A stretch of 64,000 nt of DNA, taken from the NCBI RefSeq assembly GCF_041956535.1, contig NW_027192227.1:63968-127967 (forward strand). The letters are read 5' to 3'. The notes beneath the pieces are model-generated. The model was not told the DNA's origin, did no database searches, and worked only from the letters and a program-made list of their open reading frames with translations. This document shows, piece by piece, positions 1,160 through 64,000 of this stretch; the stretch's first letter is position 1, and every line of letters begins with the position of its first letter. The DNA comes from Calcarisporiella thermophila CBS 279.70. Taxonomy: Eukaryota; Fungi; Calcarisporiellomycota. The position numbers and the translations under genes are program-made.

Positions 1160-1311
1160 ATGAAAGATTGTGAGATACCGGAAGCAAGATAAAATTATTT
1201 TTCCTTCATCTTTTGATATCATTTTAAAATACGACTAAAGAATCTACCATGTTGGTTGATTATCCTGGAATTTACTGCGAGCTAGTGAAACAACAGAATT
1301 TCAAATATCAG
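1160..1311 (+). pseudogene. Relic of the last two exons of the ABCB transporter
   Basis: ATGAAAGATTGTGAGATA..GAAGCA and TATCCTGGAATTTACTGCGAGCTAGTGAAACAACAGAAT match the 3' exons of the intact copies (16841-17007). Confidence 0.8.
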
Positions 1312-1852
1312 AGATCTAATATACTGTGGTGAATAACTCACGATTCATTATGATAAGATAGTTTAAATAACAAAAAATAAGCAACCTTCAATAAATTATA
1401 TAGGAAATCTGTCAAAGCTCTTTTTGGCAGACAATATATATAAAATTGACAATGGGCAATAAAACAAACGAGTTATGTAATCAAAGTAAAAGTTAGTAAA
1501 TCAAATACAAATACCATGTCCATCGAACCTGTTAGAAAATACCAAGCTTTCAATGTTCTCGCTAAGAGAGAAATATTGCTTGAGTAGTTCGTTTTGATAC
1601 TTTTTCGTATATTGTAAACACCCCCTAGTATGCTTGTCAATCTTAACCAATTAAAATTTAAAATATATTCTTTCAAATATCATGCTCACATTGCAACTTA
1701 GCAAATATTAAATCCAATAAAGATGATTCTGTTCCCGTAACATTATGGTAATTACTGTAACTCTTGATTTCTATTTTAAATGATCCACAGCTATATTTGG
1801 AAGCGATTTTAAATATCATTGATCCTTCATTTCAACGGCAAACTTTTAAACC

Positions 1853-3658
1853 ATGTATACCCGCCAAATGCAAGCTGCATCAATGAATACCGTATGCTCT
1901 ACTTCTGCAAACAATACTGTAGATGAAACTGAAAACTGTCTGGAGGAGCATGCTAACCTTAGTGATATACACTTGCCTTCGGATGCTTTGTACTTCCAGC
2001 TAAAACTGAATTCATTTACTGATCTACATAATCTTCTCAGCGCTCAGTATCTTATTGATGGCATCTTACTACCAGAAAACATCGCTCACCCTCAGATGTA
2101 CACAGATACTACCAATAGAGAGCATACAGGTTATTGCTCTTACTTCAAGATCCTATCTTTCCCAAAACCAATTGATGACAAAATCATCAAGTGGTCGACA
2201 AGATCTAATATTACTAGAGAGAAGCTGCTCATCGATCGACTTTTTCATGTCTATCTCAGTGCTTGCTGTGTAGGCTCTTTACACCCAGACCGTGAAGCAT
2301 TTCTTGAAAGTTATTTTTGCTGCGAACTCGAGCCTGCACTTGTCCACACTTCCATCGCAAATGCAGCTATTCATTTAATAATTAATCATCCAGAGACACC
2401 AATTAGCAGTAAGCTCCACGTAGCTGTAGGAAGTCTGATTGCGCAGGCAAAACAGTCATTGGCAGACGTATTTGATGCTCCATCTCCACAGATTGTTCTT
2501 GCTTTTATAAATATGAATTATTGTCTGACATACCTATCACTTTATAAGGACGCATACAAATTCTACTCACAGGCCGCACAGATGGCACTCTCTCTCCATA
2601 TGGACAAAAACGGTGCCACAGAGAAGTATTCTGCGCAGTTGGAGTTTCAAAGAAGAATCTGGTAAAAATAGCTATTTTCATTCAATTTATATTTTATTTA
2701 AATTGATTTCAAGTAAATCGAATATTTCTCAGGGCTATCATTTGCACACGTGAACTGGAATATGTATTTGAGTTTGGCATGCCGTCGCTAATAAGCATGG
2801 ATGTTATTAAATCATCTCCCAAGCCGACGGTGACAATGAAAGATAGCGAGCGATTCAAGTTTACAACGGTAATAAAATATATTAATTAATGGTAGTTCAA
2901 CTTATCTATTTAGCTAATTAAATATATCAGATATACCTTCTACTGCAGATTACCACATTTTCTAAACTCTTGGAACTACAGAACATTGATTGGGCACTTC
3001 CCGATGTGATTATCACGCAAAAATTGGCTGGACTTGCTGCATATTTGCAAAATGAGCGAACCGAATTAATTCAATATTGCAGTGAAGGTGACCTAAGAAA
3101 GATCCACTCTTATACAGTAGATTTCGATTTCTGGTTTCGATGGTGTGCTCTTTGGCGACAATTTATCAAGTCAGATGCACCCGCCGGGAGATTGGAGACG
3201 AATTTGATGCAACAATTGCGTGACAAGGCATTCCGCGAGTATGTCAAGGTAATTCATAATAGTATTCTTAGAACTCTAGAAATTCTGCATACTCGTTGAA
3301 TGGCTCTATAACCTTTCTCCACCTCATTATGCAGGGGTTATTCCATTGCATAATGTTCTTTAGGGTGGCGATTAATTCCCAAATTAGATGCAAATCGGAA
3401 ATTCTTTTAGTAGCACATATTATTTGTGAAGATGTTAATTTCATTGCTCAAATGCATCCCAGTGTTCGGATAGGACGCAAATTATTCCAGGAGCTTATTA
3501 AAATACTAAATATCCTGCAATCGCCTGAAATTAGAGGTATTTTACCGCAACTACTCACACATCAATTCATGGATGTATTAGAATTGATGAAGCCAACAGT
3601 GTTTTCAAAGGGGGTTTTAGAACGTACATTCGTAAAACCGTATCGGACTAAAAATTAG
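1853..3658 (+). CDS. Fungal transcription-factor MHR (Fungal_trans-like) protein without Zn cluster, copy 1 (4 exons: 1853-2661, 2733-2868, 2931-3248, 3335-3658)
   Basis: MHR-type motifs H..R..FL, L....A.AA, AAQMALSLHM.KD...EFQRRIW. Three GT-AG introns join into an open frame of ~528 aa. Confidence 0.85.
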
Positions 3659-3974
3659 AGATTGAGAAATGCATATTAGAGTGGTTAGGTTATGTAAATT
3701 ATTACATTGTATTACTTTAAAACGGTGAAAAATGGTTTGGTTTACATTTTAGATTACTGAGAAAATGTATCCTATGAGCTGGGAACTTTTTTACAATACA
3801 ATTAATGAAAAGAGCTCAGAGCTTGTATATGATTTGGCGTCCATTTGATTTTATTCGATAACCTTTTCATATATGCGAACACTGAGTAGATGCTGTACTT
3901 ACGCAAGAAAAAGAGGATGCGTAAAGCGGCGAACTGATCGAGAGAGTTCCATTACCTATGTTAGTTCAAACTTG

Positions 3975-4360
3975 CAGTAATCCTGAAACCTTATTATTGA
4001 AAGAAGCCACCAGTTCAATGGCGTAAGAGGCACTAGATAGCACAATGATGGGGCGTTCGACTCTTGTCATTGCTCATCGATTATCTACCGTGCAAGTTTC
4101 GGATCTTATCAGTGGGCGTTTTCATACTTTCAATGTTGAGTAAATGTCACTAATCCTTATAATATTAGTTGTAAGGAAAGTTGGTGAAATATGGGAAGCA
4201 GAGTAGGATAACTTTATAAAATTACCAAGAGATAGTTAAGCAAATTTACTCTCTTGATTTCAAAATTAAGCTATAATTATTTAGAGAGCATGCCAAAATT
4301 GTTGCATATCCTGGAATAATATATCAGGAACTAACGAAACAACAGAATCACAAATATTAA
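3975..4360 (+). pseudogene. Degraded C-terminal (NBD2) relic of the ABCB transporter
   Basis: Translates as [34 protein letters not shown] with deletions, followed by remnants of the last exons. Confidence 0.85.
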
Positions 4361-4377
4361 AAATCCATTAGCCTGTA

Positions 4378-5993
4378 CAAGTAGGGAAAAATGTGACAGC
4401 GTGTTTTAACAATTTTCCTTTGAATGCTCATATCTCCTGAATGGATGGAATATTATAACAGCGGCTTTATTATTAAACACTGTTGGATCTACACTATGTG
4501 CTGTTCCAACCGCTACCCCGGTTATAAATGCATTTCTGGTAAAACTAGGATATCATTGAATAGCACCCCGAATTTATGGGAAATTGATATCTTTATAAAT
4601 GCCGATGTGTGCCAAAGATACCCAAATACTTTTATATTTTCTCCACCATCCAATCTAAATATTTTTTATTTGCAACGGTGATGCTATTATTTTTTAGCAA
4701 TATCTTACACCTATGAAGCCAACTCGTAAAAAGATTCGAGAACGTGTGCTTGAACTTTCAAGAAAGGGAGAGTCCACACGTAAGGTTGCAGCACGAATAG
4801 GAATAAGCCATGAAACTGCCAGAAAGATCATCAAGGAATGGAGCACCCCGAAATATCCTCCTATGAAGCCAAAATATGGTCGTCCACGTAGTCTAAGTGA
4901 ATCAGGTGAGAAATATATCGCTAAGAAGGCGGCAACCGGAGAGTGTTCTAATCTTGCCGACTTGCAGCAAGTTATCAAAGAAGAGCTCAATAAGAGCGTA
5001 ACAAACAAAACTGTAAAAATGATGCTCAGACGTCACGAAGTAAAGCCTCGATCAAAGCCTAGGAAGCCTTTCCTGCTCCCGCGCCATTTTAAAACTCGAT
5101 TCAAATTCACAGCTCAACTTGTTAGATGGGATTTTCAGACCATTGAAACCATAATATTCTCGGATGAAACCATTGTACCCTTTTTACAGACCACGGGAAA
5201 TGAATACACATACGTAAAGAAAGGGCAGCCTCTGCGTGAGTGCAATATTATTCCAACCACGAAACAGGGAAAAGAGGCAATCATGGTATGGGGCTGCATT
5301 ACTTCGCAAGGAGTTGGACTTCTACTTCGCGTGGAAGGCGGAATAAATGCTAGGATGTATCAGATCATTTTAGATGAGGGTTTTCTTGGAACACTCGAGC
5401 GGTACGGGATAGACAAGGACAAGTTCGTGTTCCAACATGATAACGCCCCCCCTCATATCGCCAAGTCAACTCAAGCGTGACTGCGAGATCGCAATATAAA
5501 GGTCTTAGAATGGCCTGCTCAATCACCAGATTTGAATCCCATAGAAAACGCGTGGGGCCTCTTGAAGAGGAGGCTTCAAGATTATCCTACTCGGCCAAAG
5601 GATAGGGAAGAGCTCTGGGAACGAATCAAATACACGTGGGAGAATATAGAAAAGACTTATATTGATAACCTATACGAGAGTATGTTGAGGAGATTCCGAG
5701 CTGTTTTTAAAGCTAGAGGAGGATATACGAAGTATTACAATATTTTTGTGAAATAACGATAATAAATATGTCTTCAATTTTATCATGAAGGCCATTTTTC
5801 CCGAGCATCTATATTAATACCCATGGTATTTTAGAAAATGCATTTATAACCGGGGTAGCGGTTGGAACAGCACATAGTGTAGATCCAACAGTGTTTAATA
5901 ATAAAGCCGCTGTTATAATCTTCCATCCATTCAGGAGATATGAGCATTCAAAGGAAAATTGTTAAAACACACCGTCACATTTTTCCCTACTTG
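4378..5993 (+). mobile_element. Tc1/mariner (DD34E) DNA transposon with ~160-bp TIRs and TA target duplication
   Basis: TA|CAAGTAGGGAAAAATGTGAC...GTCACATTTTTCCCTACTTG|TA. TIRs ~4378-4535 and ~5836-5993 are nearly identical. Confidence 0.96.
4713..5756 (+). pseudogene. Tc1 transposase with one in-frame nonsense codon (TGA at 5478-5480)
   Basis: HTH, GRPR, FSDE, VWGC, FQHDNAPPH, WPAQSPDLNPIENAW. 34 residues separate the second D and the E. The stop falls at the usual Trp position. Confidence 0.93.
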
Positions 5994-6874
5994 TAGTCAC
6001 CAACCCATACTTCACGATGATATAGTGGCTTAATTACACAAAATGAATGGGCAACTTCCAATATATTATATATGGAATCTGTTAAAGCTCTCTTAGGCAG
6101 ACATTTTATATATAATAAATTGACAATGAACAATAAACCAAGTATAAGAATTATATAGTCAAAAAGAAATTATTAGTATAAGTTGATAATAAATATCATG
6201 CCGGATTTTATATGCTCTCGATTGGAGCAATATGTCTCGAGTAGCTTGTCTCCCTACACCTGTTACCATTAGGTATATTATTATTTACTTGCTGCCAATC
6301 TTATCGTAACTAATCACTCCGTTGGCAAGAAGACAATACAATCATTTAAAAAACTTTTGTTTGATTTTTAATAATAACACAAAAACAACAAAATAAACAG
6401 AGCTTTTTCACCCTAGTAAAACCAGCAGTTCGGAGTGGAATGATATTTGTTGGGTTACATAGGAATAGAATTCAAAACCACTCAAGATGTATGCTTCCAA
6501 AAATCAAACTCATTATGCAACCTATCAAAATATACGGCAGAAAACTGTTTGAAATCTTATACCATGTGATAAGTATAGGATAGTCTTTACGTGACACAAA
6601 GGGGATATTTTTTCTATGATCTATAGTTGCATTTGTTGCTTCTCACCAATAACTTCTACCGCAACCTCAACACAACAACCAGATTGAGCTTGTGTGTAGT
6701 AGTCAATCTTTTATGCAGATATGATATCAGATCCTGATAGTTTTGTTATGGTGAATGTCGGGGTTTTAAATTTAGCGCTCGGCTCTTGGTTTCTACTTCA
6801 ACGAGCCACAACTTCATTCGGAAGCAAATCCAGGTATCCTCGCTTCCTTTATTCCAAGTGCAATGTTTTCTACA

Positions 6875-8882
6875 ATGCATATCCGCCAATTGCTAGATGC
6901 TCCAGTCAATCACGTATACTCTACTTCTTTGAATGACACTGCAGATGAAACAGAGGCCAATTTGAAGAAATGTGCTAATCTTTGTGATATACACTTGNNN
7001 NNNNNNNNNNNNNNNNNNNNNNNNNNNNNNNNNNNNNNNNNNNNNNNNNNNNNNNNNNNNNNNNNNNNNNNNNNNNNNNNNNNNNNNNNNNNNNNNNNNN
7101 NNNNNNNNNNNNNNNNNNNNNNNNNNNNNNNNNNNNNNNNNNNNNNNNNNNNNNNNNNNNNNNNNNNNNNNNNNNNNNNNNNNNNNNNNNNNNNNNNNNN
7201 NNNNNNNNNNNNNNNNNNNNNNNNNNNNNNNNNNNNNNNNNNNNNNNNNNNNNNNNNNNNNNNNNNNNNNNNNNNNNNNNNNNNNNNNNNNNNNNNNNNN
7301 NNNNNNNNNNNNNNNNNNNNNNNNNNNNNNNNNNNNNNNNNNNNNNNNNNNNNNNNNNNNNNNNNNNNNNNNNNNNNNNNNNNNNNNNNNNNNNNNNNNN
7401 NNNNNNNNNNNNNNNNNNNNNNNNNNNNNNNNNNNNNNNNNNNNNNNNNNNNNNNNNNNNNNNNNNNNNNNNNNNNNNNNNNNNNNNNNNNNNNNNNNNN
7501 NNNNNNNAATGTATATTTGAGTGCTTGCTGTTTAGACTCTTTGCACCCAGACCGCGAAGCTTTTCTTGAGAGTTACTATTGCAGCCAACTCGAGCCTGCA
7601 CTCATTCACACTGCCATCGCATGTGCAGCTATCCACTTATTGATATCACATCCAGAGTCACCTATTATGAGCAAGCTTCATATGACTGTAGGGAGTCTGA
7701 TTGCACAGGCAAGACAGTCATTGGCAGACGTATTTGATATTCCATCACCACAGATTGTTCTTGCCTTTTTAAATATGGATACATGTCTGCAATACGTATC
7801 TCATTATAAGGACGCGTACACATTTTACCCTCAGGCCGTACAGATGGCATTTTCTCTCCGGATGTACAAGGACGATGCTACAGAGAAGGATCCTGTACAG
7901 ATAGAATTTCGAAGAAGAATCTGGTAAAAACATGCAATTAATTCCTATCCCTGTTACGCATATTCATTGATATTATGTAACTTGAATGTTCCTAAGGGCT
8001 GATATTTGCGTCCGCGAATTGAACTATGTTTTTGAACGCAACAAACCACTTCTAATAAGCATGAATATTATCAAATCGTCTCCTAAGCCGACGGTGACGG
8101 CGAGGGACAGTGAGTCGTATAAAATTGCAACAGTAATTAGATAAAACTACATTAAATAATTCATTTTATCAAGCTAACTAACTAGGTATTTCAGATATAT
8201 TTCTTACTGAAGATTACCACATTTTCTAGACTTTTAAAGCTACAAGACATTGATTGGACACTTCCCGATGTAATCATCGTGCAAAAGCTGGCTGGCCTTA
8301 CAGCATATTTGCAACATGAATATACCGAGGAAATCCAATACTGCAGCAAAGGCAACTTGCTAAACCTTTTTCCACTTGTGTTAAATTTCAATTTTTGGTC
8401 ATATTGGTGTTCCCTTTGGCGACAATTTATCAAGTCAGACGCACCTGCTGGAAGATTGGAGACAAATATGATGCGGCAGTTGCGAGAAAAGGCATTTGAC
8501 GAGTATGTCAAGGTAATGGTCTTTTTAAATTTCCGTCCATTTGTTGATTGGCATTATGCCATATCTGTACTTTATTAAACAGGGTTTAATCCATTGCATA
8601 AGTTTCTTTAAGTGGGTCATGAACTCTCAGGTCAGATGCAAATACAAAGTTCTCTTAGGAGCAAGTATTGTTTGCGATAATGTTAAATTTATTGCCCGTA
8701 TGCATCCCAAAGTTCGGATTCGACTCAAAATATTCCAGGAGCTTATTAAAATATTAAATATTCTGCAATCTCCGGAAATTAAAGGAATTTTAGCACAATT
8801 GCTCACTCGTCAATTCATGGATATATTAGACGAGATAAAACCAGCGATTTTTTCAAGGGAGGTGCTGGAACATATTGCCTAA
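6875..8882 (+). CDS. Zn-cluster-less MHR protein, copy 2 (exon 1 spans an assembly gap; alternative in-frame ATG at 6863)
   Basis: Paralog of copy 1 with the same three introns; N gap at 6998-7507. Confidence 0.75.
6998..7507. other. Assembly gap
   Basis: Run of N. Confidence 1.
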
Positions 8883-12623: not shown

Positions 12624-15600
12624 ATGGAGCTCTCCGCGTTAAAAGATGAAAACAATTCTAAATCCGCTCAATGTCCGAGAACAAAAAAGCTTTTAAACAA
12701 TCCATTCAGTAAGCTACGAAAACAAAATGAGGAAGCTCCTAAGATATCCTATTTTCACCTTTATCGATATGCGAGTAAGTTTGATGTACTATTGATTTTG
12801 TAGGTAATCCTATAATTCCAATATGGTCGATTACAGATTTTAAATATATTTTTATAGCCTCGGAATATTGTCTAGTATTACGGCTGGCATTACTAGGTCA
12901 TACACTCTTGTATCATTATGGAAAGCTGTCGCTACTATCACTTCAATAGAAGACTCGGACATTAACAACCAGGATATGATTGGTGTCATTATACCGTTAT
13001 TGGGAATAGTAATTTCAGTCATATTTTCATCGTATTTGTTAAATTGTTTTTGGTCCCTTGCAGGTGAGAACCAGACAAAGGTAAGGAACTATCATCGTTT
13101 GTATGAAATATATTTTGAATGTAATTTATGAATTTTGTACAGAGAATCCGCGAGCTATACTTTCATTCTATTCTCCATCAGGATCAGGGTTGGTTTGATC
13201 TAAATCAGTCGGAGTCGTTCAACACTCGCCTTACGGCTGACACTTTGCTCATTCAAGATGGCCTTTCAGAAAAGGCCGGATTTCTCGTTAAAGACATATC
13301 GTATGCTCTCTGTTGTTTTACGCTAGCATTTTATTATGGATGGAGGCAGTCAATTGTATTACTTGTAATTGTTCCGATAACGATATTTTCGGGAATTGCA
13401 TTTGCATACGTATTAAAAGGGCAGATTGAAAAAATTCAGAATGCTTATTCGAATGCAGGGACCCTAGTAGAACAATGTATTTCCGGAATTCGCACAATTA
13501 CCGCCTTTTCCATGCAGCATCATTTTATTGATCTCTACAATTCTTTTCTCAATGTTGCCTATCGAGCAGGCGTCCAGAATGCTATGAGAACCGGTGAGTC
13601 AAATTAACAGAAATAATTTTGAGAATGGCTATGTTTAATATGAAATCGATTTCAAGGGATTTTTTTGGGATTGGTGGATTTTTTTGAACTTAGTGCCTAT
13701 AGCTTTGGTTTTTGGTATGGAGCTCGCTTAATTTCTCAGGGAGTTATGACAAGAACGGCAGTATTGCAAGCCTTATATTTAATACTTGCAGGGTCAATCG
13801 TATTAGGGTAAATTCACTCAATTCATCACAAATACAATCATTAGAACTCTATCCATCCAAACATTTTTAGTGAAGGAGCACCAAATATCAAAGCTCTCGT
13901 GGAAGCTCAGGTGGCGGCATATAAGATATTTTCAGTCATAGACCGTAAGCCAATTATCACCTCGAGCATTAAATCTCAGAGCGAGAATATAAAATGTAGT
14001 GCTTGCCAAGGAGCGATAACGCTTTGTGATGTCCATTTTAGCTATCCTTCTCGCCCAAAAGTCCCAGTATTGTCAGGAATCGATCTTAGTATTCCAAGTG
14101 GCAAAACGGTCGCACTCGTTGGTGCTTCTGGAGGAGGAAAATCAACCATAACGCATTTGATACAGCGTTTTTATGATCCAACCTCGGGCAAGGTTCTGCT
14201 GGATGGAGTGGAGTTGCGTGAGCTTGATGTAAGTTGGCTGCGGAAGCAAATCGGAGTAGTCGGGCAGGAACCAGTCCTATTCGATGATACTATTCACAAC
14301 AATATTTCCCTTGGAGCACCCGATCGCAACCCGACACAAAAAGAGATCGAAGAAGCTTGCATTATGGCAAATTGTCACGATTTCATCGTTAAACTACCAC
14401 AAGGATATGGTACGAGAGTTGGTGAATTAGGATCTCAGCTATCCGGAGGCCAAAAACAACGTATTGCATTAGCAAGAGCCCTAATTCGTAATCCAGCAAT
14501 TCTGTTGCTAGATGAGGCAACCTCTGCGCTTGATAGCGCATCCGAAAAATTGGTGCAAGAAGCTTTAAATTCAGCTTCTAAAAATCGGACGACTTTAATC
14601 ATTGCACATCGACTCTCTACAATCCGGGAGGCCGATTGGATTGTGGTAGTAGAAAATGGAAAGATAGTTGAGCAGGGCACACATGCACAATTAATGGCAA
14701 ATAAGGGTACTTATATGGCGTATGTGGAGAAACAGCAGCTCAAAGATGATGAGGACAACAACGAAGAGAATTCCGTTGATTCAATCTTCGAGATGACAAG
14801 TAAAGTAGAAGCAGAAAGCAAGACGGTCATAACAAGTGATTCGAAGCATAACAATAATTTGGAGAAGCCAACCGGTGTGAAACTCATCTCAGAAAAACGG
14901 CCATTATACAGAACGGTGCAAATGATGTCCCCGGAATGGAAGTTCATTGGACTAGCTACATTTGGGGGACTTGTAATTGGAGCTGTAAGTTGTTTTCTGC
15001 CTTTATTTAATATTTTAATATGGCCAAATAACTATTTTTTTCCAGGTCTATCCTATTGCTGGTCTGTTAATTGGCCGTATTATTACTGATCTTGGCCTGC
15101 CCGTAGATCAAGTGGAAGAATCTGCCAAATTTTGGTCTCTTTTATTTTGTAAGTAACTCAATTAATATATCAACTAATTTCAGATTAAAATAAATAACTA
15201 CGTCTCAATATAGTCGTGTTAGCTGTCACTGGTTTCTTTGCAGTTATTTTAAGAAGCGGGGTTACTCTTTTTTGTGGTGAACGTTTCGTTCGGCGATTGC
15301 GAGCACAAATATTTAGCAACCTCTTGCGTCAAGAAATTGCATTTTTTGACCACCCAGAACACACTACAAGTGCTCTTACTTACAGATTAGCTAAAGATGC
15401 CACAGAGATATCAGAATTACCAAAATTGATCATCGTTGACGGAGGAAGTGTTTTTTCGGCATTGTTTTTTGGGTTACTAGTAGGTTTTAGTTATGGGTGG
15501 AAATTAACATTGGCACTGCTACCAACAATGCCTCTTGTTATTGGCTCATTGGTAATCCGCTTCAAGTCATTGAATGGGTAATAGTGTTGCAATGTGATTT

Positions 15601-17007
15601 GAAGACAAGGTGCCATAATGCAATTTTAGTTTTTCAGGAAAAGTGGAAAAAGAATATCGACTGGCTGGAATAGTTGCTGGAGAGGCTATTCGTGAAATAA
15701 GGACCATTGCATCACTCGGAGCTGAGCAAGCTTTTGAAAAAAAGTATACAGGTTGGTAATGTGTCTGGCCTTAGCATTCAACAATGTTTGAAGACCGAAT
15801 ATTTATAAAAAGGGTATTGTCAGGTTCCACACAGCTTCGCAATGAAAAAGGCTTTTATTACCTCCATTGGTTTTGGGTTGTCTCAAGGTGTAAATTACCT
15901 CGTCCAAATTTTGGGATTGTATCTCGGAGCACGCTTTATACATTCTGGTGAAATGACATCTCAGCAAGTCGCAGTAGTGTTGTTTACAGTCGTCTGGTCA
16001 TCTCTAGGAGTAAGCCAATTCTCTGGTCAAATGTCCAGATTTGTGAAAGCCAAACAAGCAGCCATCAATTTATTTGAATTGCTTGATAAAAAAACAATGA
16101 TCGATCCAGATGCACCTGGTGAATTTGAAGCAATAGCTCCTGGTACTGCTGAATTGCAAAATATTGCTTTCACCTATCCAATGAGATCCGACACGATTGT
16201 ACTAAGAGATGTGTCAATTCTGATTCGTCGATATCAAAAGATCGCTCTAGTAGGTCCGAGTGGGTGTGGAAAGTCAACCATCATTTCATTGTTACTCCGA
16301 TGGTATGATTGCAACTCGGGTGCAGTATCCGTTGATGGTATAAATGTCAAAGAGTGGCAGCTGGATTCGATGCGACAAAGAATTGCCTATGTTGGTCAAG
16401 AGCCGGTGTTGTTTGATATGACGGTGAGGGAGAATATCTTGCTTGGGCGGCGAAAGGACCAAGAAGTGACACAAGAGGATATCGAAGAGGTGGCAAAGAA
16501 GGCAAACATACACGATTTCATCTGTAGTCTTCCCAATGGATATCATACACGGGTGGGGGATAAAGGAAAGCAGCTGTCAGGAGGTCAAAAGCAAAGAATT
16601 GCTATTGCAAGAGCTCTGCTAAGAAAACCTGAGATCTTGTTGTTGGATGAAGCCACCAGTGCACTGGATTCGGACTCGGAGAAGTTAGTGCAGGAGGCAC
16701 TAGATAGCGCAATGGTGGGACGTACGACACTTGTCATTGCCCATCGATTATCTACGGTGCAAGGTTCAGATTTTATCAGTGGGTGTATCTATATTCTCCA
16801 AAGTTGTATGAATGAATCTAACTTCATATTATTAGTTGTTATGAAAGATGGTGAGATAAAAGAAGCAGGGTAGATTTATATTTTCTTTACTCATTCATCT
16901 CTTGATATCGTATTGACAATGTTACAATTAATAGCGAACATGCCAAGTTGATTGCATATCCTGGAATATATCGCAAGCTACTGAAACAACAGAATCTGAA
17001 TTATTAG
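12624..17007 (+). CDS. Full-size ABCB/MDR (P-glycoprotein-like) exporter, copy A1, 11 exons, apparently intact
   Basis: TMD-NBD-TMD-NBD layout. Walker A GASGGGKS and GPSGCGKS, signature LSGGQKQR twice, Walker [23 protein letters not shown] introns are conserved among copies. Confidence 0.92.
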
Positions 17008-17666
17008 TAATTTAATAGTCCGTGTTCAACAGTCTGTGCCACAGTAGGGTGAGGAGGTTTTATTAAATAGAACGAGCAATTTTCAATGATATCTACGAGA
17101 AATCTCTAAGATCCTCTTTATGGCAGAATCAATATATAAACCCAACGTTAATGAATATAAAAAACAAAGAATTATTTAGTCAAAGATAAGGATGAGTGTA
17201 TATCAGAGATAGACATAAATAGAGTATCATAATATTTGAAAAATAGGAACAGCAATCTAACAAGACTCGAAGTCGGGTGCTTTCTTATATCAAGCTCATA
17301 ATATATCTTATAAGAAATATTTTACCAGAAAATAGTAGAGAATCTTATTACATATCATGTGATAAATAGATGATTCGTCCCACTACACAAGAGAAATACC
17401 TTCGCCATGATCTATTTGTAGTGATATGTTGCTCCTCTCCAACCCTATGCTTATATATTCTAACCTAACCTCGATAGAGCAACTAGATTGAACTAGTGTT
17501 TTTCAACCTTATTTAAAAAATTATTGCAATATGGGATTGGCTGTTCCTAAATCTAGCGGGAATTAAGTTAAGGTGGTTAGTTCTAGATTTCCAATTCCAC
17601 GACAATGTATTTGGAAGCGAATATAGATATCCTGGGTTCCCCATTTCGAGAGTAGCATCTTCTGCC

Positions 17667-22986: not shown

Positions 22987-22997
22987 TTCAAGAGCAA

Positions 22998-46245: not shown

Positions 46246-46328
46246 TTTCTTATCAATGAACTCCGCTGGGTTTGGAAGCGAATATAGATATTCTCGGGTC
46301 CCTCATTTCAAGAACGGTGTTTTCCGCT

Positions 46329-49190: not shown

Positions 49191-49191
49191 T

Positions 49192-51789: not shown

Positions 51790-52059
51790 TAATCTGTTGT
51801 CAGCAGTCCACGTCCAAGCAGTTTATAATAGAATAAGCAACTTCTAATGCGTTGAATAAGAAATCTTTAAGAATCCATATTGGTAGAATTAATATAATTA
51901 TCAAACTTACAAGGGACGATAATGATAACATAAAAGGCATTGTGTAGCTAAAGATATTGATATGGTTTTATCAAAACTATATATAGATACTGTAACATTT
52001 AAATTTTCGGAAATATCGACCTGTTAATATTCTCATTTAATGTGATTCGGCTCGAATAG

Positions 52060-52936: not shown

Positions 52937-54675
52937 ATGTATACCCATCAATTAATAGCTGCACCATTGGATTCCGTATGCACCACTTCTGCGAACGATT
53001 CTGTAGATGAAACTGATAACCATCTGCAAGAGAATGCTAATCTTCGTGAATTACTCTCAACTTCAGATACTTTACACTTCCATTTCAATCTGAATTCATA
53101 TACTGATCTACATCATCTTCTAAGCGCAAAATATCTTTTTGATGGCGTCTTACTACCGGAATGCCTTCTTCGCCCTCATGCATATACATATACAACTAAC
53201 AGAGAGCAGACAGGTTATTGCTCTTACTTCAAACTCCCTTCTTTTCCGAGGCCAATCGAAGACAATATCATAAGATGGCCGACAAGATCTAACATTGCCA
53301 AAAAGAAGCTGCTCATTGATCAGCTTTTTCATGTCTATTTGAGTGCTTGTTGTGTAGATTCAATTCATCCAGACCGTAAAGCTTTCCTTGAGAGCTACTA
53401 TTGCTGCGAACTTGTGCCAGCTCTCGTCCACACCGCTGTCGCGAGAGCAGCTATCCATATATTTCTCAAATATCCAGAGTCATCACTTATGTGTAAGCTT
53501 CGTACGTGTGTAGGGAGCCTGATTGCAGAAGCAAAGCAATCATTGTCGGAGGTGTTTGATACTCCATCTCCACAGATTGTGCTTGCTTATTCAAATATGG
53601 ATACATGCCNNNNNNNNNNNNNNNNNNNNNNNNNNNNNNNNNNNNNNNNNNNNNNNNNNNNNNNNNNNNNNNNNNNNNNNNNNNNNNNNNNNNNNNNNNN
53701 NNNNNNNNNNNNNNNNNNNNNNNNNNNNNNNNNNNNNNNNNNNNNNNNNNNNNNNNNNNNNNNNNNNNNNNNNNNNNNNNNNNNNNNNNNNNNNNNNNNN
53801 NNNNNNNNNNNNNNNNNNNNNNNNNNNNNNNNNNNNNNNNNNNNNNNNNNNNNNNNNNNNNNNNNNNNNNNNNNNNNNNNNNNNNNNNNNNNNNNNNNNN
53901 NNNNNNNNNNNNNNNNNNNNNNNNNNNNNNNNNNNNNNNNNNNNNCTGATAGTTCAAATTTTCAAGTTATCTAACTAGATATTTAAGATACATATCCTAA
54001 TGACGATTATCACGTATTCTAAGCTCATGGAGTTACAAAACATTGATTGGACACTTCCCGATGTTGTAATTGTGCAAAAACTGGCTGGCCTTGCAGCCTA
54101 TTTGCAAAATGAGCAAACCGAATTAAATCAATATTGTTGTGAAGGCAAGCTGCGAAAGATGTACCCCCCTATATTTAATACCGATTTTTGGTCATTTTGG
54201 TGTTCTCTTTGGCGACAATTTATCAAATCGGATGCACCTACCGGGAGACTGGAAACGAATTTGATGCAGCAATTGCGTGAGAAAGCATTCGACGAGTATG
54301 TCAAGGTAAAAGTATTTTTGGATTTATGCATACTCACTGGTTAGTGCTATACTTTCTCTACTCTCCACTAAGCAGAGTTTGATCTATCGCATAAGGTTCT
54401 TTGAATGGGCAATTGGTTCCCGAACCAAATGCAAACTGAGATTTGATGTAGCGATGCAGTTTGTTTGCGAAGATGTTAAATTTATCTCTCAAACACATCC
54501 CAGTGTTCAAATACGGCGCAAGCTATTCTTGGAGCTTATGAAATTATTAAATATATTGCATTCTCCGGAACCCAGAGGAATCTTGACGCAAATACTCATA
54601 CGTCAATTTATGGATGTATTAGAGGAGTTGAAACCAACCGTATTTTCAAAGGAGGTATTGGAACGAGCAGTCTAA
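52937..54675 (+). CDS. Zn-cluster-less MHR protein, copy 9 (gap covers the end of exon 1 and exon 2)
   Basis: Paralog with open frames on both sides of the N gap at 53610-53945. Confidence 0.78.
53610..53945. other. Assembly gap
   Basis: Run of N. Confidence 1.
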
Positions 54676-55089: not shown

Positions 55090-56265
55090 ATGCCTGCACT
55101 CTCTGAAAGCGAACTATTAGAAATTTATATTTATTTGATTTTATATTTACTTGAAGATCTGGAAGATGACGATCTTAAATTTAACACTTTAATTATACTC
55201 TACACACTTTACAACACTCAATATTTGCGCCCAGGGATATTGGATCTTAAATCCTCTCATTTTCGTGACAACGTTTTGTTTCGCCTGGATGATGGACGAT
55301 TTCGAAAACAATTTCGCATGTGCAAACAAGCATTTAATGCTTTGGTGCTAATACTTGAGCAAGATCCACTGCTTCACACATCCGGCCCTAATCAACAATT
55401 GCCGACATGGGTACAACTACATATATTTCTTCGTCACCTTTCCAATGGGGACGATGTATTTGATTTGGTTTCAAAATTTTCGATTTCAGAAGGGAAAATC
55501 CTAAAGATCGTGAAGCGAATCACCCTTGCGATCCAGCGCCTTCATTCTAAATACATTACTTGGCCTAATATAAGGAGAAAAGATGAAATTAAGAGCAAGT
55601 TCCTCGAGATGACCGGCTTTCCTTCTGTAGTAGGCGTGGTAGATGGCACGCATTTTCGTCTAAATCACGCACCCAACAAGGATCCTGAGACTTATTGGAC
55701 ACGAAAGAAAGAGTATGCGATTCACGCACAACTTATAGTAGATTCCGATTTTCGGTTTATCCACTTCGAAATTGGTTGGCCAGGGTCCGTCCATGATGCT
55801 AGAGTATATATGAACTCACAATTTTATCGGCGCCGTGAAGAGCTACTGCATCCACCCGAATATATTATCGGCGACTCGGCCTATCCTCTTTCACCTTTTT
55901 GCATCACACCTTTTCAAACTCCTCGGTGCCGTCAAGAGATAACGTTCAACACGATATTGTCAAGAAAAGTACGAAATATTGTTGAAAGGACCATCAACCG
56001 TCTTAAAAAGCGTTTCCCAGCTTTCAATTCTTTGCGACTTAGGGAAATGGAGACTAATGTTAGACTGATATCTTGTGGGATTATCTTGCACAATTTCATT
56101 GTATCATTTGGAGATGAATGGGAAGATGATAGAGTGGGTATAACGGAGGATTCAATTAACGGGGAATCGAATATTTCGGAATATGACAGAATTGAGCGTA
56201 TTTTGGGCAAAGAAAAGCGAGATGCCTTATTGACTGAGGTGCTCTCGAGAAATGGGTGCGCTTAA
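55090..56265 (+). CDS. PIF/Harbinger (DDE_Tnp_4, HARBI1-like) transposase, intact 391 aa
   Basis: FRM...F..L, VVGVVDGTH, GWPGSVHDARV, IIGDSAYPL, RNIVERTINRLKKRF, C.ILHNF. Confidence 0.92.
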   Translation: MPALSESELLEIYIYLILYLLEDLEDDDLKFNTLIILYTLYNTQYLRPGILDLKSSHFRDNVLFRLDDGRFRKQFRMCKQAFNALVLILEQDPLLHTSGPNQQLPTWVQLHIFLRHLSNGDDVFDLVSKFSISEGKILKIVKRITLAIQRLHSKYITWPNIRRKDEIKSKFLEMTGFPSVVGVVDGTHFRLNHAPNKDPETYWTRKKEYAIHAQLIVDSDFRFIHFEIGWPGSVHDARVYMNSQFYRRREELLHPPEYIIGDSAYPLSPFCITPFQTPRCRQEITFNTILSRKVRNIVERTINRLKKRFPAFNSLRLREMETNVRLISCGIILHNFIVSFGDEWEDDRVGITEDSINGESNISEYDRIERILGKEKRDALLTEVLSRNGCA

Positions 56266-56335
56266 TGACACGAATAACTTTTGAATTGATTTTGGATCTT
56301 TATCTATTTCAGCCCAAATGCAGGAAAAAAGATTT

Positions 56336-56640: not shown

Positions 56641-56644
56641 ACAC

Positions 56645-57600
56645 CTGCGGCTTGATTTGGTATTTGAAGGGCTGTTTCAATCGCCATTAGACATTGATAG
56701 AGATGCCAAGTGTTAACCTAACTATTTTAGGGTTTCGGGTTGTGCTAGAAGTAAAACTACATAGAAAAGAATTTTATTAAGAATAAAATAAGAGTGTAAT
56801 AGAGCAGAGATGCCAATATTTACATAATACGGGCTGAATATTCACCTGTATCTAATACTTTTGGCTTGCACATTTCATTGCATCTCCATTTACAATTATC
56901 AATAAGATAATTCACATTCTTGGCAGATGACAATATAGTGGAGCCTAGTATATTGTCAAGGATGAAAACGTAGCATCGATTGGGAACATATACTCTGCAG
57001 GTCTTTAAGGCAGCGAGGATCCTGATGACCTTCTAAATGGATCGTGTTATGACTATTCTAACTTTTAATCCATAAATAATCTCTTGTCGCCGCTAAAAAT
57101 GCGCAAGCATATTGGCCCCTGCATCCAGGTCCATGATTGATTTTGTCACCTCCTTCAATTGCGATGCTGTCAGGTGACAGCTGAACTTGCGCTTCAAATC
57201 CGTAGTGAAGACATACATAGCAATTGAGCTCAGAAGATATAAAGTATAAAGTATAGGATACCTGGTAGCATCGTAATCCTTTTCATCATTCCCAACATAA
57301 CGCAAGTATTGATGACATCATCGCATCGAATATATTGTCGCAGAACAATATTCCAAAAGGTTTGCAAAAAATTTAACACCATCACATTAAAACTCTTACA
57401 ACAAGTCAGAATTTGATCAAACTGAAATTCAAGCTTGAGTTCCAGTTTTTTTTTGCCCGATCATTCTGTTTAGGTCGGTCAAGTTCATCATTAAAACTCC
57501 ATGTATGCCATTCCTCCAAATGTTGACTCTTTCGATGGTGGAAACTCAAAACTCTCAGGTTCACATATTTAGCCCAAGGTCGGAGCTTCAACTGCTAGAA
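56645..57600 (-). pseudogene. Degraded NRPS fragment (condensation-adenylation junction, A-domain motifs A1-A3) with a spliceosomal intron
   Basis: Across frameshifts: CLHYGFEAQVQLSPDSIAIEGGDK..DLDAGANMLAHF (A1 region), IVITRS..VIRILAALKTCRVYVP(ID) (A2), ARII|FTSSTTRNPKIV (A3, split by a GT..AG intron at ~56757-56823). Confidence 0.8.
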
Positions 57601-58560
57601 GTGAATAGAATAGAATAGAAATCTTATCCTAATCCCAACTCGAACACGTGTTATAATAGGGTATACAATTGAGAGGTCTAACACTGCTATATGCTCTAAT
57701 TAAAGCAATCTTGGTGATTGTAAAAGTTATTATCCGCATTTAGATAACTTTAGACATAAATTATACCAATTATCTTGCTAATACATGTAAAGCTACACAA
57801 TACCTCGGAGCTCCAACAGGTACATTGGGACCAAATTGTAATCCTTGCCGGGATTATTGGAACAACCCTCGCAATTCTAACCAGATGGGTCGAATAAGAA
57901 TATTAGGAGGTCATAGGAATAAAGGTTACATGAGTACGAAGTCGACGAGAGCTAGATGGATAGGCGACCCAAATTTACCACTCTTAATTATGCGATTTCT
58001 GTCATCGTGCCATGTGAATAAGCTTAACTAAGCGAAAAAAAAATAAAAGGCTTAAATCGACAACTTTAATCACCAGCCTGAGAACGGTTGCTTTTACAAT
58101 TCCACGAATAAAATTCATTTAGCCAAAATTATTCATTTCACCGTACAAACCATTTTAAGCTCTAAGATGAAATTGAAAAGTCTCCTACAAAGGTACATTA
58201 TATCTGCAAATATAATCAACAACAGGTTTTATACAAGAAAAGTTTGAGCAGTAAAAACAGTAGCTATACATATTCCATTTGTATTACAATAGTGATGGCT
58301 ACGCTTGATGGGAATATAGGTTGTAATACAGCTCTTTTATAACAAAAAAAAATACTAATGATAACCTTAGATTCGCTAACATGATTTGTGCTAGGTTACA
58401 TGTTAACTTAGAAGTGGGCTTTTGAGGTTTATACTCCAGAGTATAAAATGGGCTTGATTGAAGGTTATATGCGTAGGTGAAATTTTCCTGAATGTTTTTT
58501 TGTTACTATATTGTATTAAATAATTCAATCCAAAACTAAAAGCACCTAGTTTTCTCATCT

Positions 58561-61500
58561 ATGGAGCTCTCCACATTGAATGGTCCTAGCGATACCAAAT
58601 CTATCCGATTGCCGAAAAGAAAAAAAATACTGAAAAATCCATTCCTTAAGCAGTCAAACCAAAGCAAGAATGACGAAGTTTCCAAGATATCCTATTTACA
58701 GCTCTATCGATATGCGAGTAAGTTTGATATGTTTTTGATTTTGTAAGTGTTTACTTAGGATATGATCGATTCCATGCTCTTATTAAACATTTCTTACAGC
58801 CTCGGGATAGTATCTAGTATTACGGCAGGCATTTCAAAATCGTTTGTTATTGTGTTTCTATGGAAAGCAGTTGCTATCATCAGATCGATAGATGCTCTAA
58901 ATTCTGACAACCAGGATATGAATGATGCCATTATACCACTTTTAGGATTAGTTATTTCAGTCATACTTTCATCTTATTTATTAAATTGTTTTTGGTCTCT
59001 TGTGGGTGAGAACCAGACAAAGGTAAATGAAATATCCAATTTTCTATGGCATATATCTTATATCCAGTCTGTAAAATTGGATAGCGCATCCGCGAACTTT
59101 ACTTCCATTCGATTCTCCACCAAGATCAGAGCTGGTTTGATCTAAACCAGTCGGAGTCACTCAACACTCGCCTTTCATCAGACACTGTGCTTATCCAAGA
59201 GGGTCTTTCAGAAAAAGTTGGGTTCATCATTATGGACACATCGTATGCGATTTGTAATTTTACGCTTGCGTTTTATTTTGGATGGAGGCTGTCGGTTGTT
59301 TTGCTCGTGATTGTGCCAATGTTTGGATTTTCAGGCTATGCATTTGGACATGTATTAAGGAATCAGACACAAAAAGTGCAGAAGGCTTATTCGAATGCTG
59401 GGATGCTAGTAGAGCAATGCATTTCTGGAATTCGCACAATTGCCTCCTTTTCCATGCAGCAGCAATTTATCGATCACTTCAGTGCATTTCTCAATATTGC
59501 CTATCAAGCTGGCGTACGTAAAGCTACGAGAGCAGGTATGTAAATCAACAGATATGCTTTATTTGAGAAGGACTATATTAATATTGAAATTGAATTGAAG
59601 GAATCTTTATGGGACTGTTTGAGCTTATTGATTTTAGCGCCTATAGTTTTGCTTTTTGGTATGGGGCACACTTAATTTCTCAAGGAGTTACAACTAGAAC
59701 GGTGGCATTACAAGCATTTTTTTTAATAGCTTCAGGATCGGCGGTAATTGGGTAATTTCTTTCTCTTCTTTACAAATACAATCACGAGAACTATATTCAT
59801 TCAAACATGGATAGTCAAATAGCACCCAATTACAAAGCGCTTGTGGAAGCTCAGGTAGCAGCGTATAAAATATTTGCAGTCATTGATCATAAGCCAGCTA
59901 TCACATCAAGTATTAAGCCCCAGAGCAAAAGTATCAAACATAGCACTTGCCAAGGCGAGATCACGTTTTGTAACGTTCATTTCAGCTATCCCTCTCGCCC
60001 AGGTATCTCAGCGCTGTCAGGAATCGAACTCAGTATTCCTAGTGGCAGAACCGTCGCACTCGTTGGTGCCTCTGGAGGAGGGAAATCAACCATTACACAT
60101 TTGATACAGCGTTTTTATGATCCAACCTCAGGCAATATTCTGCTGGACGGAGTAGATTTGCGTGAGCTTGATGTAACCTGGTTGAGAAGGCAAATAGGAG
60201 TAGTTGGACAGGAGCCAGTTCTATTCGATGACACTATTCGCAACAACATCGCTCTTGGTGTACCTAATTACAACCCGACACAAAAGGAGATCGAGGAGGC
60301 ATGTATCATGGCAAATTGTCACGATTTCATTAGCAGCCTGCCTCATGGATATGACACAAGGGTCGGTGAACTGGGCTCTCAACTATCCGGAGGCCAAAAG
60401 CAGCGCATTGCACTGGCGAGAGCCTTAATTCGTAATCCAGCAATCCTGCTGTTAGATGAGGCGACTTCTGCACTGGATACTGCATCCGAAAAGCTGGTGC
60501 AAGAAGCACTGAAATCTGCATCCAAAAATCGAACGACTCTAATCATTGCACATCGACTCTCTACGGTTCGTGAGGCCGACTGGATTGTGGTGGTAGAGAA
60601 TGGAAAGATAGTTGAGCAAGGCACACATGCACAATTAATTGCGAATGAGGGTACTTATATGGCATACGTGCGGAAGCAACAGCTCAAAGATGAAAGGGAC
60701 AACAAAGATGAGAGCTGCATTGAATCCTCCTATAATATGGAGAGTAAAGTAGAGTGGGATAGCAAACCGAGCGTAATACATGATTTGAAGCATAACAATA
60801 AATTGGCCGAAACAATCGGGGGAGATGTCATAGTAGAAAAACGACCAATATATAGGACAATGCGAATGATGTCCCCTGAATGGAAGTTGATTGGGTTAGC
60901 CATAATTGGTGGTCTTGTTATTGGATCTGTGAGTAGCTTTTGTGCTTTTTTTTACTTTTATATATCAACTAACCAATTATTTTTTCCAGGTCTATCCTAT
61001 TCACGGTCTATTCATTGGTCGTATAGTTGACGTTTTCGGACTACCCGCTGATCAAGTGGAAGAAGCTACCAGATTTTGGTCTCTCCTATATGGTAAACAC
61101 CTCGAATTTTAATCAATCACTATCAGTCTCTAAAATATCACCCTATTTTGTAATATAGTCGCGTTGGCTATCATTAGCTTCATTGCATCTCTTCTAAGAG
61201 ACGGGGTGACTCTTTTTTGTGGTGAACGCTTCGTTCGGCGATTGCGAGCGCAAACGTTCCGCAATCTCTTACGTCAAGAAATAGCCTTTTTCGACCACCC
61301 TGAACACACTACAAGTACCCTTACTTACAGATTAGCTAAAGACGCTACGGAGATATCAGAATTGCCAAAATTGGTCATTGTTGATGGAGGAAGTGCTATT
61401 TCGGCACTATTTTTTGGGTTACTCATAGCCTTTAGTTATGGGTGGAAATTAACATTGACGCTGCTACCGGCAATGCCCCTTATTATAGGCTCGTTGCTTT

Positions 61501-62953
61501 TCCGCCTTAAGTCACTAAATGGGTAACAATGTTGCTGCATTATTTGGAGAGGAGTTTCTAAAGTATAAATTTAGGTTCTCAGGAAAGGTGGAAAAGGAAT
61601 ACCGGCTAGCTGGAAGGATTGCCGGAGAGGCTATTCGCGAAATAAGAACCATCGCGTCACTCGCAGCTGAGAATGTTTTCGAAAAGAAGTATGCAGGTTG
61701 GTGATACTTGCGTCTAGCATTTATTTTCAGCTATGTCTGATGAATGTAATTTTATATACAGAATATTGCCAAGTACCCCATAGTTTCGCAATGAAAAAGG
61801 CTTTTATTACCTCCATTGGATATGGTTTATCTGAAGGATTATATCATCTCGCTCATATCTTGGGATTATACCTCGGAGCACGTTTCATACATTCTGGTGA
61901 AATGACCTCTCAGCAAGTTACAGTAGTGCTATTTACAGTAGTATGGTCATCTCGGGGACTTAGTCAATTCTCCAATCAGATGCCCAGGTTTGTAAAGGCT
62001 AAACAAGCTGCCATCAATTTATTTGAGTTGCTGGATAAAAAAACGACGATCGATCCAGATGCAACGGGTAGATGTGAAGCTATAGCTCCTGGAACCGCAG
62101 AATTGCAAAATACTGCTTTCTCATATCCGATGAGATCCGACACAATTATATTAAGAGATATATCGATGCTAATTCAACGATATCAAAAGATCGCCCTAGT
62201 AGGTCCGAGTGGGTGTGGAAAATCGACCATCATTTCTTTGCTTCTCCGATGGTATGATTGCGATTCGGGTGCAGTATCCGTTGATGGAATGAATGTCAAA
62301 GAATGGCAGCTGGATTCGATGCGACAAAGAATTGCCTATGTTGGTCAAGAGCCAGTGCTTTTCGATATGACGGTGAAGGAGAATATCTTACTAGGGCGGC
62401 GAAAGGACCAAGAAGTGACGCAAGAGGATATCGAAGAGGTGGCAAAGAAGGCAAATATACATGATTTCATCTGCAGTCTTCCCAATGGATATCATACACG
62501 AGTGGGTGATAAGGGAAAGCAGCTGTCAGGAGGTCAAAAGCAAAGAATCGCAATCGCAAGGGCTCTGTTGAGAAAACCCGAAATCCTATTGTTGGATGAA
62601 GCCACCAGTGCACTTGATTCAGACTCGGAGAAGCTGGTGCAAGAAGCACTAGATAGTGCCATGGTAGGGCGTACAACGCTTGTCATTGCCCATCGGTTAT
62701 CTACCGTGCAAGATTCGGATCTTATCAGTGAGTGCTTTCATATTCTCAAAGTTGAATAAGTGTCACTAATCCCTATATTATTAGTCGTAATGAAAGATGG
62801 TGAGATAAAGGAAGCAGGGTAAGATTATTTTTACTTAATTCATCCATCGCTTGCTATTGATTTGACAATGTTACAATTAACAGTGATCATACCAAATTGG
62901 TCGCGTATCCTGGGATATACCGGGAGCTAGTGAAACAACAGAAACTGAGCTAA
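58561..62953 (+). CDS. Full-size ABCB/MDR exporter, copy A5, 11 exons, apparently intact
   Basis: Same exon structure as A1; both NBDs have complete Walker A/B and LSGGQ; no lesion seen. Confidence 0.92.
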
Positions 62954-63915
62954 CAGTGATATAATAGTCTGTAATCTGCGCCCATGCTTCACGATAGTAA
63001 GGTGGTATTATTACACAATACGGGCAATTCCCAATGAATTATATAAGAAATCTTACAGATTTCTTTTGGTGGGCTTGCCATATGTCAAACTGTCGAAGAA
63101 CGATATAAACAATAAAACGAAGAATTATGTAGTTAATGATAATGATAGGAGTATATCAAGGATAAACTTATAGTAATACTTGAAACTTTTGAAAAATATC
63201 GAACCATCAGTGTTCTCACATAGAGATTTGGCTGGAATGGTTCACCTCACTACATGTTGTTATTACTATATGTATTATTATCCACCCCTTGCAGGTCACT
63301 CTAATTATATTTGGAGGGTAGTTAATATGATTTTAATAATATAAATTGAAGATTAGTTTTAAAAATAAAAAGGCGTTATGACAATTTTGCGGGTAATCCT
63401 TTTCTTGACTACACAATAATAACAAAGTTATTTCGCCCTATTAAATCCAGAGGTCGGCAAAGATAACAAGTTTTTATTTAGTAACTGATATCAAAAAAGA
63501 CTCAAAATTGTGTACTTGCTATCCTAAAGCACACAATACATCAAAAAAGAAATATAATGCCAAATAATTGTGTAGAATCTAATTTCATGTCATGTGATAT
63601 ATTAATGAGTCGCCTTGCTGCACAAAGCGTACTGTATTCTTCATGGTCCATTTGTTACAGTATGTTGCTTCTCTCCTATCAACAATACTGTATCTACAAA
63701 TTCTACTATATTCACGTCACAGCAACCAGATTAAGCTTGTACTATATTGAAATTACCTGAAAACTTATTGCAAAATGGAATGGGCTATTCGAATCTATCG
63801 GAATTTTAAATATGGTGGTAAGCTCTCGATTTCCATATCAAAGATCCACCACTGGATTTGGGAGAGAAAATAGATAATCCTGATTCATTTCATTTCAAGA
63901 GCAGCTTTTACCGCC

Positions 63916-64000
63916 ATGTATACTCGCCAATTGTTAACTGCGCCAATGGATACCGTGTGCATCACTTCTGCGAACGATTCTGTAGATGGAACAGAAAGCC
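63916..64000 (+). CDS. Start of Zn-cluster-less MHR protein, copy 10 (runs off the window end)
   Basis: GCC ATG TAT ACT CGC CAA TTG (MYTRQLLTAPMDTVCITSANDSVD) after the conserved leader. Confidence 0.85.
   Translation, partial: MYTRQLLTAPMDTVCITSANDSVDGTES

Follow-up and report, generated by a model that had tools for sequence, protein, structure and literature searches.

The window, a stretch of 64,000 nucleotides from Calcarisporiella thermophila (positions 63968-127967, + strand, of the 167,686-bp contig C37), carries a tandem array in which ABCB efflux pump genes are followed by small genes encoding middle homology region (MHR) proteins. We give a probability of roughly 0.6 to the reading that this array is an old amplification of an exporter region linked to a nonribosomal peptide synthetase (NRPS) gene, together with one captured MHR-only gene. 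The adjacency of pump and MHR gene would then be inherited, and it is not proof of a functional connection. As judged from its coding sequence, the small gene is a true MHR-only gene, which is a more unusual result than the array itself.

The window was mapped by tblastn with the exon pieces of one pump gene (A1) and the database model of one MHR-only protein (P0006). Direct repeats consisted of a unit of approximately 2 kb occurring nine times (MHR) and an ABC unit occurring five times. From the start of the window, the order was relic-1 and M1; relic-2, a Tc1/mariner insertion and M2; A1, M3, M4 and M5; then A2, A3, M6, M7 and M8; A4 and M9; a DDE transposase and an NRPS relic; and finally A5 and M10, A standing for ABCB and M for MHR-only genes. 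The original prediction held that all genes were co-oriented, and every ABCB and MHR copy in the window was indeed on the + strand, but the NRPS relic lies on the - strand. Database proteins identical or nearly identical to window genes bear locus tags of the form VTP21DRAFT_81xx. The features are given below (TMD, transmembrane domain; NBD, nucleotide-binding domain; ORF, open reading frame).

1160..1440, + strand: relic-1, ABCB 3'-end remnant upstream of M1 (67% DNA identity to A1 16841-17138)
1853..3658, + strand: M1, MHR-only gene, four exons, no defect seen (stop-free tblastn exon matches; ATG and stop positions)
4027..4359, + strand: relic-2, ABCB 3'-end remnant (72% identity to A1 16694-17006; tblastn match to NBD2 residues 273-353)
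4376..5995, + strand: Tc1/mariner element in the relic-2/M2 spacer (HTH_Tnp_Tc3_2; 160-bp inverted ends, 98% identical)
6863..8882, + strand: M2, MHR-only gene, broken by gap 6998-7507 (promoter and ~135 nt on the left, codon ~122 on the right)
12624..17007, + strand: A1, ABCB gene of full size with TMD-NBD-TMD-NBD order, no defect seen (ABC_tran twice and ABC_membrane by Pfam; exon pieces; ABCB1 the best solved relative)
17008..17666, + strand: ABCB-to-MHR spacer, ending in ~200 bp of conserved sequence that resembles an MHR promoter (homologous at every junction; alignment of 15 MHR upstream regions)
17667..19429, + strand: M3, MHR-only gene, no defect seen
21065..22120, + strand: retroelement reverse-transcriptase ORF in the M3/M4 interval (RVT_1)
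22998..24770, + strand: M4, MHR-only gene, no defect seen, alternative upstream ATG
27381..29146, + strand: M5, MHR-only gene (P0006 maps exactly; PF04082 27.8 bits)
33760..38145, + strand: A2, ABCB gene with two frame breaks (NBD1, NBD2), start approximate (exon pieces; 300-nt tract identical to A3)
38830..41490, + strand: A3, 5'-truncated ABCB gene, from ~residue 199 of the NBD1 exon piece
42027..43792, + strand: M6, MHR-only gene, no defect seen (weak PF04082 match with exon 1 alone)
44360..46124, + strand: M7, MHR-only gene, no defect seen
46329..48088, + strand: M8, MHR-only gene, no defect seen
49192..51791, + strand: A4, 5'-truncated ABCB gene, from ~residue 186 of the NBD1 exon piece
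52937..54675, + strand: M9, MHR-only gene, broken by gap 53610-53945
55090..56265, + strand: transposase ORF (DDE_Tnp_4), which we take to be of the Harbinger/PIF type
57147..57976, - strand: relic of an NRPS 5' end, divergent from A5 (75-80% DNA identity to C37:22890-24288; tblastn 74% over 54 aa)
58561..63170, + strand: A5, full-size ABCB gene, no defect seen; 5' flank a copy of the region between the NRPS and ABCB-a
63916..64000, + strand: M10, first part of an MHR-only gene extending beyond the window end (as far as C37:129884, assembly gap inside)

Beyond the window, C37 carried ABCB-0 (- strand), ABCB a, b, c, d, e and f, and four further MHR copies plus a broken one; the contig totals were 12 full-size ABCB genes or remnants and 14-15 MHR copies. 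The rest of C37 overlapped the window without differences. Since the copies differed from one another by 12-30% in DNA, they are genuine paralogues, and their interpretation as assembly duplicates was rejected on the same ground.

The six junctions between an ABCB 3' end and an MHR gene named in the original prediction were all real, as a query spanning the A1-to-M3 spacer (16400-17700) matched at each of them: relic-1 (1160-1440, 1794-1885), relic-2 (4027-4359), A3 to M6 (40766-41490, 41717-41904), A4 to M9 (51189-51791, 52523-52970), and A5 to M10 (62349-63170, 63479-63949). E-values ranged from 1e-18 to 0 for the blocks at the ABCB 3' end and were weaker, approximately 3e-8, for the short blocks preceding the MHR starts. 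Four further homologous junctions on C37 lay beyond the window, giving ten in total, with a spacer of approximately 660 bp. Because all junctions have the same spacer, the linkage goes back to one evolutionary event and was then amplified, and because the pairing traces to one ancestral event, adjacency alone is no proof of joint function.

The two genes also occurred apart. In the sequence examined, no ABCB gene was present at the MHR loci fetched from contigs C32, C3, C9, C23, and C2, and the nearest ABC_membrane match to any other MHR locus among those listed was approximately 21 kb away, on C2; the genome-wide searches scored the best candidates only. MHR genes were likewise absent from the examined flank of three ABCB out-paralogues (C7, start of C23, C2) and from the visible sequence around an NRPS-ABCB pair at the end of C5, which includes a gap of approximately 3 kb and stops about 0.5 kb past the pump. 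Within the array, M4, M5, M7, and M8 represent MHR duplications without a pump, pumps adjoin without an MHR gene between them in A2-A3 and a-b, and pumps have decayed beside intact MHR genes in the window. The MHR copies on C32 and C3 fell within the C37 clade, and they therefore departed from the array with no pump; just ~90 bp of the upstream sequence remained at the C32 copy.

The link of the pumps to NRPS genes was seen in two places. A multi-module NRPS gene with Condensation, AMP-binding, and PP-binding domains (condensation-adenylation-thiolation order) occupies C37:13.0-24.3 kb on the - strand, divergent from ABCB-a, and ABCB-0 flanks it on the other side, so that a backbone NRPS gene directly adjoins transporter genes. 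In the window, 57147-57976 corresponded to the 5' end of this NRPS and 57996-58799 matched the NRPS/ABCB-a intergenic region; together, these matches indicated that the A5 unit is a copy of the NRPS/ABCB-a junction. The relic was established by DNA comparison and tblastn against the C37 NRPS, Pfam giving only a Condensation match with E = 0.22. On C5, the nearest ABCB out-paralogue stands at the contig end, beside a paralogous NRPS (45-63% amino acid identity; pair at C5:1321-1338 kb). Thus, NRPS-ABCB adjacency occurs twice in the genome, and ABCB-MHR adjacency has one origin. Because the array grew from an NRPS cluster, the pumps are most likely peptide exporters. The presence of transporter genes within NRPS clusters is a general principle, described in bacteria (PMC7849407). 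As in those clusters, a divergent intergenic region is common to the NRPS and the ABC exporter, here twice; unlike them, the exporter was amplified to 12 copies over ~150 kb along with an unrelated neighbor gene. There were 99 condensation-domain matches genome-wide, which seems many for a Mucoromycota species.

The age of the array and the selection acting on it were estimated by pairwise Nei-Gojobori comparison among C37-clade copies, over four exons for MHR and four exon pieces for ABCB. Synonymous divergence (dS) was 0.59-0.79 for MHR and 0.61-0.74 for ABCB, with ratios of nonsynonymous to synonymous divergence (dN/dS) of 0.21-0.34 and 0.13-0.19, respectively. Both families are under purifying selection, and the matching dS values indicated that divergence in the ABCB and MHR families covers the same period and that their joint amplification is old. 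Along the MHR gene there was no sign of positive selection, no 30-codon window exceeding a dN/dS of 0.66; its most variable parts were the N-terminal tail and alignment columns 341-380 and 411-450. Both gene trees were star-like, with end branches of ~0.07-0.19, which indicated an old burst of duplication.

From these results, the array may have arisen as follows. An old tandem amplification would have grown out of an NRPS gene cluster. In it, a pump gene and its neighboring MHR-only gene were copied head-to-tail as a unit of approximately 8.5 kb (the ABCB gene, the 0.66-kb spacer, the MHR gene, and 1.5-2 kb containing the promoter of the next pump). The MHR gene would have landed downstream of a pump once only, captured from an MHR family that was expanding independently and is species-specific. 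Later, the copies diverged under purifying selection, MHR genes were partially duplicated without pumps, pumps were truncated by recombination in NBD1, and transposons were inserted. The pumps, with diversified membrane domains, would expel the NRPS peptide or compounds related to it, or give protection from them.

Several observations weigh against this account. The nearest ABCB out-paralogue, on C5, ends approximately 0.5 kb before the contig end, which hides its downstream neighbor, and an ABCB or MHR neighbor elsewhere could have been missed by best-candidate scoring. The ten assembly gaps on C37 hide portions of several units. The star-like trees leave co-duplication of each pump with its own neighbor unresolvable, and the pump substrate and its tie to the NRPS product are deduced from position only. 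Furthermore, lasting purifying selection on both neighbors and a conserved spacer are also what would be expected of a functional pair.

Such a pair was the central claim of the original prediction: the MHR-only protein would sense small molecules and control or act on the adjacent ABCB pump, through a partner factor, by sequestration, or directly, and the two would have been amplified as a functional module. A functional sensor-pump link is possible, its support being the inherited adjacency, but we regard the module as rather unlikely. Ten junctions were retained with a conserved spacer, both genes are under purifying selection with equal dS, the MHR fold was confirmed, and in Pdr1/Pdr3 the xenobiotic-binding region lies within the MHR-containing part; nevertheless, the linkage has a single origin, no pairing was seen at the MHR loci and ABCB out-paralogues examined elsewhere, and where pumps are missing, truncated, or left as relics, the MHR copies have multiplied and remain whole.

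The promoters also spoke against a linked module. The common blocks of the pump promoters comprised an E-box-like CCATGTGAATAA several hundred bp before the ATG, GCCTGAGAA, and a TATA box, whereas the MHR promoters carried blocks of their own that differed from the pump blocks (15 upstream regions). No 7- or 8-mer was conserved in both the pump and the MHR promoter sets, which is a weak test of co-regulation, and no paired CGG-type site stood out in the conserved pump-promoter blocks. The arrangement of the Pdr1 type, in which a zinc-cluster regulator acts on paired CGG sites of a pump promoter, was therefore not found. Pdr1 and Pdr3 bind DNA via the zinc cluster and control ABCG-type pumps, and their genes are not adjacent to the pump genes. 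The C37 array resembles Pdr1/Pdr3-Pdr5 in combining a protein that contains an MHR with an ABC efflux pump, the two being possibly related in function, but here the pump is of the ABCB type, a DNA-binding domain is lacking in the MHR protein, and the link consists of a single-origin physical adjacency. The linked sensor/pump module was thus not borne out, given the single-origin spacer, the lack of pairing at the paralogues examined, independent duplication, pump decay, and the absence of a common promoter k-mer. In spot-checks of the literature, we found no publication on such a linked ABCB/MHR-only architecture.

The pump promoters contain a candidate regulatory site, the E-box-like block (C)CATGTGAATAA. 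It occurred in nearly all nine aligned pump promoters (as CACGTG in one; at ~12000-12020 in A1), and was retained, followed by GCCTGAGAA and the TATA box, even in two pump promoters with unrelated sequence farther upstream.

The MHR-only gene has four exons and encodes approximately 520 amino acids. P0006, which is M5, has exons at 27411-28190, 28264-28401, 28466-28780, and 28847-29143, with GT-AG introns of 73, 64, and 66 nt. The domain searches used lone exons or database gene models, exon alignments being joined for dN/dS only. Single-exon Pfam scans were mostly blank or under the cut-off, but PF04082 scored above its cut-off of 23 in 7 of the 10 database models scanned (24.5-34.9 bits, P0006 among them), and PF00172 was found in none; 27 of 32 members of the wider family matched PF04082. 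A sequence-profile search against solved structures gave no useful match. The MHR fold supposed in the original prediction was confirmed as an all-helical, Cep3-like middle homology domain (MHD), and in fold and sequence the MHR-only proteins were nearest to Zn2Cys6-type regulators. Seven of the MHR copies in the window were complete and three were interrupted solely by assembly gaps or the window end.

The family extended well beyond C37. A genome search gave approximately 50 MHR-only loci, of which 14-15 were on C37, a tandem run was on C23, and the rest were scattered. The run at C23:205000-238000 consisted of 11 head-to-tail genes on the - strand (12 with a partial one), which share 40-60% identity with the window copies and have a stop-free exon 1 in all but one case, and there was no ABCB match anywhere in the 40-kb stretch fetched around it. 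An exhaustive HMMER scan found only 42 matches to the family in 1.84 billion representative proteins; 9 of the 10 matches whose source was looked up were from C. thermophila and one was from Cunninghamella, and every named match of a first protein search was from C. thermophila. A zinc cluster occurred only in the two most distant HMMER matches.

These features invite the interpretation that the MHR-only family has a role outside transcription and pumps, for example as fast-turnover helical scaffolds for recognition or signaling, and that its members are passengers in the pump array. The ~50 loci, the C23 array without an ABCB match, and the scarcity of relatives beyond C. thermophila agree with this interpretation, as do the several copies located less than 20 kb from contig ends (C9, C3, C14, C8, C25, C1, C49) and Cep3, which shows that the fold is usable as a non-transcriptional scaffold. 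One paralogue on another contig, P0034 (VTP21DRAFT_239), is fused to a NB-ARC/STAND NTPase (Fungal_trans 249-342, NB-ARC 606-787), which also fits. The MHR is an unusual N-terminal domain for a fungal protein of the NLR type. We nevertheless consider a role of this kind improbable, since no window along the gene was positively selected (maximum dN/dS 0.66) and both fold and sequence point to Zn2Cys6-type regulators.

The absence of a Zn2Cys6 cluster from the MHR genes, also proposed in the original prediction, held up in every comparison. PF00172 was absent from the whole 168 kb of C37, compared with 75 matches elsewhere in the genome, and the cysteine pattern used in a published survey (PMC10141177), CX2CX6C...CX2CX6-8C, was absent in all six frames from C37 and the C23, C32, C3, C9, and C2 loci (approximately 26 gene copies). 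Matches to a C2H2 pattern were discarded as off-frame artefacts within the ABCB TMD1 exon. In each of nine window copies that were checked, an in-frame stop preceded the conserved ATG by 6-153 nt, homology between copies ended approximately 200 bp upstream of this ATG (15 MHR copies aligned), and the room upstream of the MHR genes was only ~660 bp, bounded by the pump 3' end and its stop codon. A conserved helix ahead of the MHR aligned with the same segment of the canonical Zn2Cys6-MHR proteins P0048 and P0049, as would be expected if an ordinary ancestor had lost its zinc cluster.

A survey of fungal proteins provides a strong prior for caution, since more than 90% of "MHD-only" entries were mis-annotated, usually with a zinc cluster less than 1 kb upstream; it regards MHD-only proteins as exceptions and does not settle whether the domain acts without a DNA-binding domain (PMC10141177). 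Several database gene models of the MHR family were in fact truncated or chimeric, and C37 has ten assembly gaps; even so, it is very improbable, and appears already largely refuted by the zero PF00172 count, the lack of any full Zn2Cys6 or genuine C2H2 motif, the bounded upstream space, the end of homology, and the in-frame stops, that the MHR genes encode ordinary Zn2Cys6 factors, with a DNA-binding exon that gene prediction overlooked or that an assembly gap conceals. Compared with the CeGAL family (Zn2Cys6-MHD factors such as Gal4 and Cep3), the MHR-only proteins share an MHD above the Pfam cut-off and the Cep3-like fold, but they have neither Zn2Cys6 nor C2H2 in any frame and form ~50 paralogues in one species, in tandem arrays (PMC10141177).

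The MHR-only proteins would be Cep3/Gal4-type helical scaffolds minus the zinc cluster, and may act by protein-protein contacts, such as pairing with canonical Zn2Cys6-MHR factors, rather than by DNA binding. TamA of Aspergillus nidulans and Dal81 of yeast are zinc-cluster proteins with a dispensable DNA-binding motif. They offer a precedent for an MHR-type co-regulator working via protein contacts; however, the genes of both retain the zinc cluster and exist in one copy each. A stretch at C36:57000-81500 looks like a tandem array of canonical Zn2Cys6-MHR genes, judging from seven Zn_clus matches on the - strand, ~3-5 kb apart, six of which have a same-strand Fungal_trans match approximately 1 kb away.

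In the pumps, the long + strand ORFs carried ABC_tran and ABC_membrane in Pfam searches, and TMD-NBD-TMD-NBD lay in one gene, as in full-size ABCB proteins, with collinear exon pieces in A1, A5, and other copies. Among solved relatives, the NBD1-containing exon piece matched ABCB1/P-glycoprotein with E = 1e-186, followed by ABCB4, BSEP, and Ste6. The pumps share the one-gene domain order with these four proteins and differ from them in their tandem array, diverged membrane domains, and several truncated or frame-broken copies. A1 and A5 looked intact, A2 had two frame breaks and is probably a pseudogene, A3 and A4 were truncated in NBD1, and two copies were 3' relics. A2, A3, and A4 broke or began at approximately residues 186-199 of the NBD1 exon piece (35528-35531, 38830, and 49192), and in A2 and A4 the sequence directly past the break was as NBD2-like as NBD1-like. 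This clustering of break points and the NBD2-like sequence suggest repeated unequal recombination between the two nucleotide-binding domains. A 300-nt tract was 100% identical between A2 and A3 (37403-37702, 40645-40944) inside a region that was 87% identical overall.

The two assembly gaps in the window that interrupt MHR genes are each collinear with one gene in one orientation. Gap 1 (6998-7507) lies inside M2: its left flank (6655-6997) is the MHR promoter and approximately the first 135 nt of the M2 coding sequence, and its right flank restarts at codon ~122, so that ~270 nt are missing relative to intact M3 and 510 N are written. Gap 2 (53610-53945) interrupts M9 and separates codon 214 of exon 1 from exon 3; ~410 nt are expected there and 385 nt are found, 336 of them N. 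M2 and M9 were scored as having no defect seen rather than as intact, as gap length and frame are not verifiable. In the sister copies M9 and M10, the assembly gap opens at the same codon, 214 of exon 1 (53610-53945; C37:128556-129158), and something hard to assemble may be present there in both. M4 has lost the conserved ATG of the family and starts instead from an ATG located 42 nt before the aligned start (22977-23040), with a retroelement just upstream; the database model P0001 opens with the same residues as M4. A second copy of the Tc1/mariner element, 87% identical, lies directly downstream of the C9 MHR gene.

A more far-reaching idea, which we put forward as doubtful, is that the ~50 selected MHD-only proteins work without a DNA-binding domain and that one clade came to sense ligands for, or to regulate, an amplified set of NRPS-linked ABCB exporters, different compounds being served by diverged sensor-pump pairs. 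Such a coupling of sensor and pump, if true, would be new; its present basis is one ancestral adjacency. The NRPS-associated ABCB exporter, at 12 copies, is a candidate for diversified export or self-protection. For the question whether an MHD can act in the absence of a DNA-binding domain, the dozens of intact MHD-only paralogues without a zinc cluster, kept under purifying selection in an early-diverging fungus, constitute a clean natural test case.

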